Position numbers and translations under genes: made by a program
Assembly: GCA_904063045.1 (NCBI GenBank)
Contig: CAJFCJ010000020.1
Coordinates: 1,170,916 to 1,234,915, forward strand
Direction of reading: 5' to 3'
Length of the DNA: 64,000 nt
Origin: Dimorphilus gyrociliatus
Taxonomy: Eukaryota > Animalia > Annelida
Shown here: one piece after another, positions 8,937-56,500 of the stretch
Numbering within the stretch: position 1 is the stretch's first letter
Layout of the letters: every line of letters starts with the position of its first letter
The notes under the pieces: generated by a model
Told to the model about the DNA's origin: nothing
The model's input: the letters and a program-made list of their open reading frames with translations, nothing else
The model's database searches: none

Positions 8937-9860
8937 TTAGACATCTTCAATGAGTTTGTTATGAAGGGTCATTAAATCTTTGAAATATTTGACTGTTTTT
9001 ACTTTCAATTCTAGTGTAGCATCTTCATCTGCAACAAAAATTGTCTTTGGATGCTGTTGGAAGGCCGAAACAGTCCACATATGATTAACACCTTCTTCAA
9101 TAGCTTTATGTAACGCTAGAGCTTTGTGGCTTCCAGTTATGAGAATCATAACTTCTCTAGCATCCATTACTGTTCCCACTCCAACTGTGAGAGCCATATG
9201 AGGTACTTTGGATATATCACCTTGGAAAAATCTCGCATTTGCCTGAATAGTGTCGAGAGCAAGAGTTTTCACCCTCGTTCTATATTGAGAGCATAGCTAT
9301 TACTTGATGAATATTGGCGAAAAGTTTTATTTACTGACCTTGATACCAGACTTGATCCTGGTTCGTTAAAAGCAATGTGACCATCTGGACCAATTCCACC
9401 AACGAATAGTTCTACCCCTCCGGCTTCCAGAATTTTTACTTCAAAAGCTTCGCATTCCTTAACTAAATCTGCTGCATTACCGTCTAGAATATGAGCATTA
9501 TTCGGATCAATATCAATGTGTTTGAAGAAATTGTCCCACATGAAAGAGTGATAACTTTCTGGATGGTCGCGAGGTAGACCCACATATTCATCCATATTGA
9601 AGGTTTTAACATACTTGAAAGATAATTGCCCAGCCTTATGGTATTCTATCAACTTTCTATAAGTACCCAGGGGAGTACTACCTATTAAAGGGCCAATTAA
9701 ACCTTAAAATATATTATATTTTTTACGTTAGCCTACCCGTGGGTAATCCCAAAGTAAAGTAGCGTTTTTCATTCGGTTTAAAATCATTTATTCGCTTTTT
9801 AATGTATTTGGCCGCCCATTCGCTGGCCTTATCATAATTATTCAGGATGACTAGCCTCAT
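8937..9860 (-). CDS. GNPDA: Glucosamine-6-phosphate deaminase (3 exons)
   Basis: MRLVIL...[43 protein letters not shown]..., [12 protein letters not shown]. Confidence 0.97.
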
Positions 9861-9960: not shown

Positions 9961-10962
9961 TTATTGCCCCATTTTTATTTCTGATACTCCTTGTTCGAGA
10001 TCTTTTTTAATTTTCGTTGCTTTATCCTTGTACTCTTGACTTCTCTCTTGATTTTTTTCAACACCATCTCCCTTTTTATACATAATACTAACATTCGCAC
10101 ATGATTGAAAATGGCCTTTTTTTAGATACAGAACAATCATAACTTACTGATTCATTGTCAATTTTTGCCGAAAAGTGCTTAAAAAAGTTTTTGTATATGA
10201 ATAGTTACGCTATGAGTCGTTAAATACTTTAGAGGTGATTGAACTGTACCTAAATTGCAAGCTTTAAGTGCGTAATCAAAAGCTTTAGTTAAATTTTGTG
10301 GCATATTCCCAAATTTTTCCGATAAAAAATAAGCAGAAGCTAAATAGCAGGCATCAGGATCCTTCATAGAGCAGGCTTTGTCAAAGCAATTTAAAGCTTC
10401 TTGCTGATTAGATTCAACGCCATGGCCTTTCCTATACATAAGTCCTTTATGATAACAACTATGTCTATTGTTTGATGAACATCCTTTAAAAAACAACGAA
10501 AACGCCTTCTTCAAATCCTTATCTCCTGCCTTTCCTATAAGATTATAATTTCCAGCCTATTTTTTGCATGGATAAATTAATACAGAGATTATTACAATAG
10601 GTCTCCATACATTTAATTACTTTTTAAGCAGACGAAAAAATATTATAATAAAAAATGTAATAATCTAAATATTCAATTATCCATGCCTTATAGCATGATA
10701 AACCATGATTCGCTTCTTCGCAATTTTCCTCAAATATTTTTCTGGCCGAAGCAAAATCATGTTTAAAAGCCTCATATAGATCTGCCAATCTATGGCAGCC
10801 ATCTGCTTGTTTCTCATGATGGCATTGAAATTTGTATTCAATTTCTATAATTTTTAAGTACTCTTGAGCTTGTTTTTCATCTTTCAAATCAAACATCCCA
10901 GATAATCCTGAACCTTCACTATCCATGCGAGGAGCGTTTGGTCTAGTTGCTTCCTCACTCAT
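9961..10962 (-). CDS. COA7: Cytochrome c oxidase assembly factor 7 (Sel1-repeat); exons 10962-10687, 10556-10250, 10115-9961
   Basis: GMFDLKDEKQAQEYL..IEIEYKFQCHHEKQADGCHRLAD matches the COA7 N-terminus; Sel1 repeats SCYKAG, SCYHKG, ACYLAS, SCANVS; first intron is GC-AG. Confidence 0.9.
10557..10686 (-). mobile_element. Intron bounded by 31-bp imperfect terminal inverted repeats (Introner/MITE-like), GC donor
   Basis: Intron 5' end GCATGGATAATTGAATATTTAGATTATTACA (10686-10656) vs plus strand 10566-10596 GCATGGATAAATTAATACAGAGATTATTACA: 26/31 identical, ungapped; right arm ends 9 nt before the AG. No clear TSD. Confidence 0.6.
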
Positions 10963-11349
10963 GTTTACTGTTCTTAAAAGAAACAATTTATTTACCTAAA
11001 TAATTGACTCAAGTATTTTTTTCCTTTTCAATGTCGAATCTATGTTGCAAGACGCCCATTCAATTTCAACTTCGCATGTATTTTTTCGGCTAGTCTGGTA
11101 CTCTATCCTGTTCAGCATATCCTTTTTATGAATGAGAAATGCTATGTTAATGATACTAAACAGGAATACGTAACCTTATATCAAGATCTCGGGTTGTTAA
11201 TATGTCTATGAAAAATTCTCTTACTCTGTCACTCAATTTTACTTTTCACATAATTTCATTATATTTTCTTTCACATTAAGAAATACTGTAGTACGAAAAA
11301 AACCACCAGTTTATATTGGTCTTAGTTAAAAGAAACCGGTATAGCTAGA

Positions 11350-12080
11350 ATGGCAGACGAGAGAACAAAAAAAACTTTAGCTCAAATTCCCCTTTTGAAA
11401 ACGAAAGCCAGTCCTAGAGATGGAGACTTGTGGAGGCAACGATTGAAAGAAGAATATCAAGCGTTGATTGAAGTGAGTTTTTAACATTTTATGACTATTT
11501 ACCTACCCATATGCTCTGAGCAATATTACAAGAAATTAGCAACTATAATACAAACGTGTCTGATAAAATAGATCAAACAGTCATAATAAAACAATACTAT
11601 CTTAAATGTTTGAAAACATGAAAAAGTCATTATTCCTATATGCAAAATAAACTAATCAAATATAAATATATTCATTTAAAGTAATTATTAATTTTTCTGT
11701 TTCAGTATGTAAACAAAAACAAGCAAGAGGACAATCACTGGTTCATGCTAGAATCTAATGAAATTGGTACTAGGTGGTTTGGAAAGTGCTGGTATATTCA
11801 CGAAATGTTGCGTTATGAATTTGATGTGGAGTTTGACATTCCTGTAACTTATCCAAGTACTGCTCCAGAAATAGCTATACCTGAATTAGATGGTAAAACA
11901 GCTAAGATGTACAGAGGAGGAAAAATCTGTTTAACAGATCACTTCAAGCCTTTATGGGCAAGAAATGTTCCTAAATTTGGAATAGCTCATGCTATGGCTT
12001 TAGGATTGGGACCTTGGCTGGCTGTAGAAATACCAGATTTAATTGAGAAGAAAATTATAGAACATAAAGAAAAAAACTAG
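11350..12080 (+). CDS. UFC1: Ufm1-conjugating enzyme 1 (exons 11350-11472, 11706-12080)
   Basis: [28 protein letters not shown]; [38 protein letters not shown]. Confidence 0.98.
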
Positions 12081-53551: not shown

Positions 53552-56500
53552 ATGAGTGAGATGAAGGTAATTCTTCTTATATTTACTAAAACTATAATAA
53601 TACAGCTTACAAATAACTACAATTTGCGAAAATTTGCCTATTTATAACTAGTTCTTTTTATTCGAGTCGACGGCGTCGTTAGATACAGAAATTTTTTACA
53701 AGTTATATTTATTTTCATTTACTTTTGTAGAAAGTATTCTCAGTGCCTAATAGTATTCATGGCCAATCTTCGATCTACTTCTGCTGGCAAAAGAAACTTG
53801 GAAACTACCTGGCAACAACTAGGTAAAACAAATTCATTTGATATTGAATAGTTAGTAAAAATTCCTTTCTAGTTTCGACAACATTGTCAGAATCTATGAT
53901 CGACATGGAGATCTACTTCAAGACCCTAGTTTGCCCGGTATGTGTTCTGGATTGGGATGGGACAAGGATGGCGACAATCTTGCAATGATATCTGACAAGA
54001 GTGGAATTATATTTTTATGGAGTACAAATTCATCCAAAATCCAACAAATCGACAGTGGTTTTAGGTAAAATTGTATTCTTAATGAGTGAATTTTTCATCA
54101 AATGTTTTCTACAACAGAGACACATTGACCGTGCTTTCGTGGGCTAAAAATAGTCATCTACTCGGTATAGGAACGCAAAAAGGGAATCTCCTTATTTATA
54201 ATCCAACAACTTCTAAGTAAGCACACACTCTCTAACTTGATAACTCTGAAATTGTACGTTTTTAAAGGAAAATTCCAATCCTTGGCAAGCACACGAGAAG
54301 TATTACGTGCGGTTGCTGGTCCAGAGAAAACCTACTTGCCCTTGGATCAGACGACAAAACAATAACAGTATCAAATACTGAGGGAGATACTATCCATCAA
54401 ACATCATTACGCGCATCTCCAACGGATATTCAATTCTCCGAAATGAAGTTAAATGAGAGAAGCGCCACGGGTGATAACACGGTAATGAAAACTTTTGTTG
54501 TTTTTGTTCGTTTTGTTAATTTAACAAAATACTTTTCTAGATTAGCTGCATTGTTGGAAAAAAGTCCTTGTTGCTACTAAATATGGATGATCCAGAAAAT
54601 CCTGTTGAATTGGCTTTTCAAGGCCGTTACGGACAGATTGTAGAATATAAATGGTATGGTGATGGGTATATCTTAATAGGTTTTTCAAACGGCTTCATAA
54701 TATCAATATCAACCCACTCGTCAGAAATTGGTCAAGAGTTATTCCAAGTAAGCTTTATTAGTGCATTAATACAATTGAAAAAATGTTTCGTTCAATTGTA
54801 GGCTAGAAATCATAAAGATCAGTTAACCTGCTTAACAGTATCCTATGTTACCCTGAAAGCAGCATCTGGTGGGGATAACGTTGTCAAAGTTTATGAGATG
54901 ACTGATATGAAAGAAATCAGTGCAATTATAAACTTGGAGGAAAGGCCTGATTCAATCAATTGGACAGATGATGGGCAATTACTAGCTGTTTCAACGGTTA
55001 AAGGAAATTTAAATGTTTATTTGTCTAAATTACCCCAACTAGGAGCAGCTTATCAAACAAGACTAGCATATTTAACCTCTCTCCTGGAGGTTACAGTTCA
55101 AGATGATGTGAATCAAGATGGTTCTCAGCTATTAAATGTTGATATAGAGCCATCTTTTCTAGGCATAGGACCATTTCACGTTGCTGTGGGAATGAATAAT
55201 AGAGCTTGGTTCTATATAATGGCAGATTCAGGTACGTTTTCCCTATTGTTTGTAATAAAAATAGAAAATTTCTGGCGGCATCCACTTCTTTCAATTGGTT
55301 TATTATTTAAAAACAAAAGATGGTAGATTATCATGAATATTGCCGAAAAGTATTGGCATAAGTTGACATTTTACAATGTTTTTGATCTTTGTAATACTTT
55401 CACTGTGTTCCTAAATCATATTTTTCGCATCTTTAATATTTATTGATAGTCTTATTTGTCATAATATTATTGGAACTCGTCAGAAACTTTATTCAAACAA
55501 CAAACACGCAATAATATAATATTTATTTATAATATCTAAGCCATTTTTCTTTAAATTCACGAATCTTCCACTATAAACAGTCTTAAGATTCGGTAAATTA
55601 TGTTCACTTTAAGTGTTTTATCTGTTACTTTGTCACAAAATCTGTACAGGAGAAGCTATGAATGTTCCATCACAGTATTACAGTGAATCGAGTACGTCGT
55701 ATTCCTTTTTAGCATGGCTTAAATGATTATTTTTTTCTTCTTTTGAAGATTGATCTTTATGAAAAATTTGATTTCTGTAAAGCTTATCCTATTCATTGCT
55801 TGTCGTAATTTATAATTATATATATGTAGATATATATATATATATATATATTTATTCTGTATATAATTCTAGATATCTCTTTTTATATTATTCTATGTGT
55901 TATCTAGGTCCAGAGAAAGTGAGAGATCGCGAATATTTGGGAACCGTTCAAGTTTGTAAATTAAACGCAGACTATTGTGCAGTAAGATTTGAAAACAGAG
56001 TCCAACTGCATGTAATTGAAGAAGAAGGAAATAATCCCGAAAGAGAGAGTCGCCTATTCCCAGAGAATGAATCAGACTGCAAAGTTACTTGCCACGATCT
56101 GACACCCGAATTTTTAATTTTTGCAACTAATGTAAGTTTTCAAGAAGATTTATCAAACTTGCTAAACAATTTTCTTTATAATTAGACTGGAGGTATTTTC
56201 TATTTTTATCTGGAAGATTGGCAATATGTCAACGAATTTAAGCACATCACTGGCATAACCTATTTAACATCTGACCCTTACGGCACTCGATTAGTTTTCA
56301 TTGACGATAAAGCCGATGCTTTTGTTTATAATCCTGTAAACGACGAACAGGTTGCCGTGCCTCAGTTCTCTGCCAAGACTACTGGCATTCTTTGGGATCA
56401 GTGGCAATTAGACAAGGGAGTTTTTGTATCCTGGGACGAAGAGTTCATCTATACGTATCTCTATAGTCGAGATTCAATCAAAGGCCCTGATTGTAAACTG

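Follow-up and report, generated by a model that had tools for sequence, protein, structure and literature searches.

A GC-AG intron with a long terminal helix in the COA7 gene of Dimorphilus gyrociliatus

Introduction

Typical GC donors of U2-type introns are compensated by a near-perfect match to the remainder of the consensus, as in AAG/GCAAGT (a slash marks a splice junction throughout). In certain yeast introns, pairing takes place between the regions of the 5' splice site and the branchpoint. Introns of the (AC)m-(GT)n type in zebrafish are bridged by RNA structure and are spliced without U2AF2 (Lin et al. 2016, PMC4691745). The nonconventional introns of euglenids carry a short pairing between positions +4 to +6 and positions -8 to -6, and both of their borders are non-canonical (PMC11282704; PMC12501133).

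Introners are found in Micromonas, Aureococcus, dinoflagellates and fungi, where they form families of similar copies that are usually flanked by TSDs (reviewed in PMC11282704). The tunicate Fritillaria borealis has non-canonical introns derived from MITEs, and these are summarised in the same review as being mostly AG-AC or AG-AT, with TSDs and in repeated families (Henriet et al. 2019, summarised in PMC11282704). The paper that describes the genome of Dimorphilus gyrociliatus makes no mention of non-canonical splice sites or hairpins (PMC7854359). Here we describe an intron in the COA7 gene of this worm that begins with GC and whose two ends are complementary over 31 nucleotides.

Results

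The COA7 gene and its exons

The window, by which we mean the whole stretch of 64,000 nucleotides that was analysed, corresponds to C20:1170916-1234915 of the D. gyrociliatus assembly (77.9 Mb, 349 contigs), an AT-rich genome with a GC content of ~31%. The COA7 gene model consists of the following parts, given in window coordinates.

10687..10962, minus strand: exon 1, with the ATG at 10962, 92 codons and the C-terminal end GLSCYK
10557..10686, minus strand: intron 1, 130 nt, phase 0, AAG/GCATGG ... AAAAAATAG/GCT
10250..10556, minus strand: exon 2, 307 nt, beginning AGNYNLIGK; Pfam Sel1, E 6e-13
10116..10249, minus strand: intron 2, 134 nt, GT-AG, phase 1, GTACAG...CTAAAAAAAG
9961..10115, minus strand: exon 3, including the TAA stop codon

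The exons were searched one at a time as separate queries. A profile search returned 182 COA7 relatives. Named orthologues establish the identity of the gene, with annelids among the best named matches, and exon 1 shares 46-61% identity with COA7 orthologues, whether named or unnamed. Sel1 repeats are recognised by Pfam in both exon 2 and exon 3. The full-length COA7 protein of the genome itself is not among the 120 of 182 profile-search matches listed. When exon 2 was compared with protein representatives, long multi-repeat Sel1 proteins dominated and no COA7 orthologue appeared, and a word search with this exon produced no candidate.

A genome search found exon 1 of COA7 to be single-copy in the 78 Mb. 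Because exon 1 exists only once and this housekeeping gene is conserved, COA7 must be expressed through the interruption that follows this exon. Upstream, COA7 stands head to head with a UFC1-like gene on the plus strand, with ~390 nt between the two start codons (window 10962-11351). Directly downstream of COA7, an ORF resembling glucosamine-6-phosphate isomerase starts at 9860, also on the minus strand.

The splice junction of intron 1

Every frame-keeping combination of GT or GC with AG, and of AT with AC, was enumerated. The junction between the GC at 10686 and the AG at 10557 is the sole one that is collinear with COA7 orthologues in a gap-free alignment, wherein the end of exon 1 corresponds to orthologue residue 73 (vertebrates) or 76 and the second residue of exon 2 corresponds to residue 75 or 78. 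A reading of this DNA made earlier from the sequence only had named the GC donor as the one junction that restores SCYK/AGNY, and the enumeration agrees. It also stated that there is no GT donor in frame, which is incorrect in that form, since one is present within exon 1.

10702..10703, minus strand: competing in-frame GT dinucleotide, ATG/GTTTAT

This GT at 10703 is in frame with the AG acceptors at 10535, 10526 and 10484, and each of these pairs would remove at least 12 conserved residues including LSCYK.

The sequence AGGC is present at both junctions of intron 1 (window 10557-10562 and 10685-10690, minus strand). Thus, an identical mRNA results from five placements of the boundaries (AG..AT, GG..TA, GC..AG, CA..GG and AT..GC), of which GC..AG is the one chosen by convention. 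With these boundaries, which restore both the frame and the collinearity with orthologues, the intron resembles those of the U2-type GC-AG class. The rest of its donor is not close to the consensus: AAG/GCATGG matches at G+1, A+3 and G+5 and is mismatched at +2, +4 and +6. This GC donor is weak and, unlike ordinary GC donors, uncompensated. We rejected a U12-type intron, as the donor GCATGG is not of the /ATCCTT type and there is no TCCTTAAC branch site near the 3' end.

The 13 nucleotides that precede the AG of intron 1 are 38% pyrimidine and 54% A. The absence of a polypyrimidine tract, which the earlier reading had also noted, is therefore literally true, but it is not extreme, because 61 candidate introns taken from the window, a crude and noisy sample, place its pyrimidine content at the 28th percentile. 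The clear GT-AG introns of the window are mostly 50-75 nt long and have T-rich tails. Intron 2 of COA7 also has an A-rich tail, and in its MFE structure the first 6 nt pair with a segment that ends 10 nt before the AG (6+5 bp of end pairing). Taken as a whole, the fold of intron 2 does not reach significance (z -0.87).

A helix formed by the two ends of intron 1

The predicted RNA structure of intron 1 can be divided into four segments.

10656..10686, minus strand: 5' arm, 31 nt, containing the GC donor itself (inverted-repeat search)
10597..10655, minus strand: apical segment between the arms, 59 nt, AT-rich and weakly structured (MFE and centroid)
10566..10596, minus strand: 3' arm, 31 nt (inverted-repeat search and fold)
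10557..10565, minus strand: unpaired A-rich tail of 9 nt, AAAAAATAG, closing with the acceptor AG (fold)

The arms are 84% complementary over their 31 nt without a gap, with Watson-Crick pairs at 26 of the 31 positions and one additional G-U pair. Pairing begins at the very first base of the intron (10686) and stops at 10566, 9 nt short of the AG, and both the extent of the match and the position of the tail are as originally described. The outer stem is a perfect 10 bp and encloses the 5' splice site. Folding against shuffled controls gave -31.7 kcal/mol for the intron RNA (z = -5.4), and none of 200 shuffles was as stable. The end-pairing score is 20.5, a value that did not occur once when the intron was shuffled 200,000 times. 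Complementarity at the opposite ends is thus beyond chance, as in introns that are bridged by structure.

Extending the folded sequence by 60 nt of exon at either end leaves the helix intact in both the MFE and the centroid structure, and the sense RNA is ~8 kcal/mol more stable than the antisense RNA (-31.7 vs -23.9). The two arms are the top inverted repeat of the 64-kb window once low-complexity repeats are set aside, and intron 1 ranks first among the ORF-bridging hairpin candidates of the 264 kb covered by the window and L013-L032. The 3' arm contains an unpaired AAU internal loop located 20-22 nt upstream of the acceptor, which is a possible branch site.

We regard it as exceedingly improbable that the complementarity of the ends arose by chance, or that the interruption is an assembly error or a disrupted gene and not an intron. 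The sequence is AT-rich and the maximum score among window-wide shuffles, 19.5, comes close to the observed 20.5, but shuffling of the intron itself never reproduced the observed pairing. Moreover, the boundaries were set independently by protein collinearity, COA7 is present once in the genome, and a related lineage is interrupted at the same codon, again with a GC start (see below).

Stems over 5' splice sites usually inhibit the binding or access of U1. One could therefore imagine that the helix acts as a brake, which hides the weak GC donor, and perhaps the AG too, and thereby lowers or regulates COA7 splicing via intron retention. The location of the 5' splice site within the perfect 10-bp outer stem would suit such a function, as would an extended fold that pairs sequence around both junctions, wherein CUAU in exon 1 pairs with AUAG at the 3' end of the intron. 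The extension of the helix into the exons is not significant, however (z -1.34), and efficient removal of the intron is expected from a conserved, single-copy gene. We therefore consider a brake improbable.

Mirtron hairpins are of pre-miRNA size, about 60-100 nt, with a small loop. If intron 1 were the precursor of a 3'-tailed mirtron-like RNA, trimming and dicing of its hairpin would follow splicing and debranching and would release small RNAs. The geometry would fit, as the hairpin starts from nucleotide 1, has a stem of ~26 bp and ends with a short 3' tail. Yet the hairpin measures 121 nt, far above the usual size of a pre-miRNA, its apical region alone accounts for 59 nt and there is no match in Rfam, all of which makes this a very improbable explanation.

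Position and age of the intron

For comparison we used four metagenomic COA7 loci of invertebrates (L009-L012) and human COA7. Three of these loci contain introns close to the site of interest.

L010:1684-1806, L011:505-624 and L012:785-907: metagenomic invertebrate COA7 genes that have in common phase-0 introns after FQ/C and NCxxNK/

In L010, L011 and L012, a phase-0 GT intron follows NCxxNK, which is 7 codons upstream of the intron-1 site, and another follows residue 46. In L009 (L009:2-631), no intron interrupts the coding sequence between residue 38 and the stop codon. There is no intron at the SCYK/AGNY codon in L009-L012 or in human COA7, and none at the site of intron 2 in L009, L011 or human. 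Exon 2 of human COA7 is 141 bp long and ends at c.287, such that the human introns follow c.146 and c.287. The site of intron 1 falls between c.219 and c.220 in the numbering of the 231-residue vertebrate protein, far from either human intron, provided that the turtle and frog proteins on which this numbering is based align collinearly with human COA7. The positions given for the human introns in the sequence-only reading (c.106 and c.247) were thus mistaken, although its point that they differ from the position of intron 1 stands.

By these comparisons, both COA7 introns of the worm are lineage-specific. The positions of COA7 introns also differ among L010-L012, L009, which is intronless over the same span, and human. 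From the sequences compared, COA7 intron positions appear to be unusually variable among animals.

There is one related lineage that bears on the age of intron 1. It is represented by P0151, a Logan-derived ORF that is 78% identical over exon 1. P0151 reads GLSCYK, then Ala-Trp (GCN TGG), then 11 unrelated residues before a stop. This reading implies that the related lineage is interrupted at the same codon and that its interruption likewise starts with GC.TGG; the GC is thus not an assembly error. Back-translation of the P0151 read-through gives an inferred sequence for the first 42 nt of that lineage's intron. It aligns with the first 40 nt of intron 1 with one gap and would fit a conserved 5' arm carrying one indel, but past the first 6 nt the similarity exceeds that of shuffles only marginally (p ~0.04).

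On these comparisons, intron 1 appears to be older than the split from the P0151 lineage, at 78% identity of exon 1. The intron is thus not very young, and the proposal of a recent gain holds in a relative sense: the position is lineage-specific relative to human and L009-L012, but it is shared with a lineage that is only 78% identical in exon 1. The retention of 84% complementarity across a protein divergence of 22% argues for selection on the pairing, and this is our own estimate.

Is the intron a transposon relic?

The sequence-only reading had interpreted intron 1 as an Introner-like, non-autonomous DNA transposon. In this scenario the helix is a functionless relic: an element bearing TIRs, or the last member of an Introner-like family that has since died out, landed in the exon and contributed the GC donor, and the helix is the decaying pair of TIRs. 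Several features are consistent with such an origin. The intron has terminal inverted repeats of 31 nt that begin exactly at its first base, and its position is absent from the outgroups (L009-L012 and human), being shared with a single related lineage. The element itself supplies the 5' GC or GT in the introners of Micromonas (PMC11282704), and MITEs with mariner-type TIRs as well as MULEs have been reported in the genome of this worm (PMC7854359).

The family of copies that defines Introners is absent, however. A BLAST search with the 130-nt intron against the whole 78-Mb genome returned only the intron itself, and neither 31-nt arm recurs in the genome at up to 3 mismatches. A genome-wide search for the two 10-nt termini, placed 40-400 nt apart with up to 2 mismatches, recovered only tandem arrays and coincidences. 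This pattern gave 63 hits versus 13 in the control, with the surplus coming from tandem arrays on C7, C98, C112, C198 and C268. The array at C7:3466589-3493028 has a period of ~1.65 kb, and a unit of ~6-10 kb recurs on the four small contigs C98, C112, C198 and C268; these arrays are unrelated to the intron. One further hit, L005, was rejected as a second copy of the termini since its resemblance is coincidental and lies at the ATG of a gene for a small membrane protein.

As noted from the beginning, there is no clean TSD, and only AGGC is common to both junctions. This repeat would fit an insertion, as would the resemblance of the start of the intron (GCATGGATAATT) to the start of exon 2 (GCTGGAAATT), with an anchored p of ~0.006 obtained post hoc. 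No such similarity links the upstream sides (p 0.69). In addition, the 9 extra nucleotides that follow the right arm make the element asymmetric about the junctions. Templating from the flanks by fold-back repair was not supported: in local alignments of the intron with the neighbouring 400 nt to the left and to the right, the scores are 14-15, and the null mean is 15.9.

The age of the interruption also weighs against decay from an inert repeat, since it predates the 22% amino-acid divergence of exon 1 and an unconstrained repeat would be expected, by our estimate, to have fallen well below 84% complementarity. Within the 78-Mb genome, intron 1 is thus a unique sequence that belongs to no Introner or MITE family. 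A transposon origin is possible, its positive support being limited to the inverted repeat itself, and we consider it unlikely, though by no means negligible, that the helix is a functionless relic of this kind. The intron may have arisen from an old transposon or by a fold-back repair insertion. The case illustrates that terminal inverted repeats by themselves are not sufficient to call an Introner.

Other hairpin-ended candidates

Across the 264 kb that comprise the window and L013-L032, hairpin-anchored intron candidates are no commoner than in shuffled sequence, and no second case was verified. Several individual candidates can be described.

In the window, a 30-nt imperfect inverted repeat (54003-54289, plus strand) surrounds 287 nt between two exons of WDR19 (IFT144). 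The Pfam profile of WDR19 jumps here from position 60 to 122, which means that a small exon must lie within the 287 nt. This hairpin was therefore rejected as a single intron, as it spans a hidden exon and the repeat would pair across that exon.

A candidate GC-AG intron of 207 nt is located at L030:5561-5767 (minus strand), between an exon encoding a CFA20 domain and a 1441-codon WD40 ORF (WDR90-like). Its ends pair over 12 bp without a mismatch (GCATATCTTTAT / ATAAAGATATGC), and a tail of 10 nt follows. There are also three GT-AG intron candidates, all on the minus strand, that extend from L026:9742 to L027:393 and over L019:7289-7598 and L028:8934-9511. They carry the strong donors GTAAGT, GTATGT and GTATTG. 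The first 11-20 nt of each pair with a segment that ends 8-16 nt before the AG, and one of them has an A-rich tail (AAACAAATAG).

Discussion

A possible role for the helix in splicing

We favour the view, with a probability of roughly 0.55, that intron 1 is a genuine U2-type GC-AG intron of COA7 that was gained in the lineage of the worm, and that it has a weak donor and a terminal helix that probably helps to pair its splice sites. The removal of the intron from the RNA is something we infer. A structural role of the helix in splicing is the best-supported, albeit unproven, reading of this locus, and it agrees with the alternative offered in the sequence-only reading, a structure-dependent intron.

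The helix of ~26 bp sets the 5' splice site beside the region of the branch site and the 3' splice site. In this arrangement, the 5' splice site is one stem away from the unpaired AAU loop and 9 nt from the acceptor. By defining the ends that are to be joined, the helix might make a poor GC donor usable over the GT decoy that lies 17 nt upstream. Precedents for such a role are the (AC)m-(GT)n introns of zebrafish and the end-paired introns of euglenids. The helix would then need to open, or to be passed on, upon binding of U1/U6 and U2. The burial of the donor in a 10-bp stem is a difficulty for this helper role because the stem must open for U1/U6.

A broader proposal is one that we hold with rather less than even confidence. 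The worm might possess a distinct class of spliceosomal introns in which a long end-to-end helix, and not a GT together with a pyrimidine tract, specifies the ends to be joined. At positions gained anew, such a helix would allow GC, GG or GA to serve as donors. In that case, the COA7 intron would be a clean single-copy member of this class, whose helix has been under selection since before the split from the related lineage.

If the helix does direct splicing, this intron would show that, in an animal, RNA structure can stand in for the canonical splice signals of introns gained anew. Such a case would bear on how new introns become spliceable and on how non-GT donors are tolerated. The locus is a compact and easily tested case: the intron has only 130 nt, it lies in a single-copy housekeeping gene, its outer stem of 10 bp is perfect, and the in-frame GT decoy precedes the donor by 17 nt.

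Comparison with known systems

With ordinary U2-type GC-AG introns, intron 1 shares the GC..AG boundaries as well as G+1, A+3 and G+5. It differs in that its donor, GCATGG, lacks the compensation that is typical of AAG/GCAAGT. The 3'-tailed mirtrons likewise have a hairpin that starts at the first nucleotide of the intron, and a few unpaired nucleotides separate this hairpin from the AG. The apical region in COA7 is much larger, however, such that the hairpin is not compact, and it has no match in Rfam.

Introners resemble the COA7 intron in the terminal inverted repeats at their ends, in an element-borne donor that can be GC and in occupying a new position. They differ from it as families of copies with the usual TSDs, which often supply one of the splice sites, whereas the COA7 intron is unique and has no clean TSD. 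The introns of Fritillaria, insofar as they are described in the review that summarises them, share with the COA7 intron an animal genome, a non-GT donor, species-specific positions and inverted-repeat ends. The COA7 intron is instead GC-AG and single-copy, although AG..AT is among its five equivalent placements.

Nonconventional introns of euglenids are similar in their end-to-end pairing, the absence of a pyrimidine tract and their insertion at new positions. Their consensus is different and their pairing is short, whereas the COA7 intron pairs with 31 nt per arm and has a normal AG acceptor. The structure-bridged introns of zebrafish and yeast are similar in another respect, in that complementary segments at opposite ends join the splice sites and can replace recognition of the pyrimidine tract by U2AF2. 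In those introns the pairing involves simple repeats or internal segments and the splice signals are single-stranded, whereas the COA7 helix consists of unique sequence and includes the 5' splice site.
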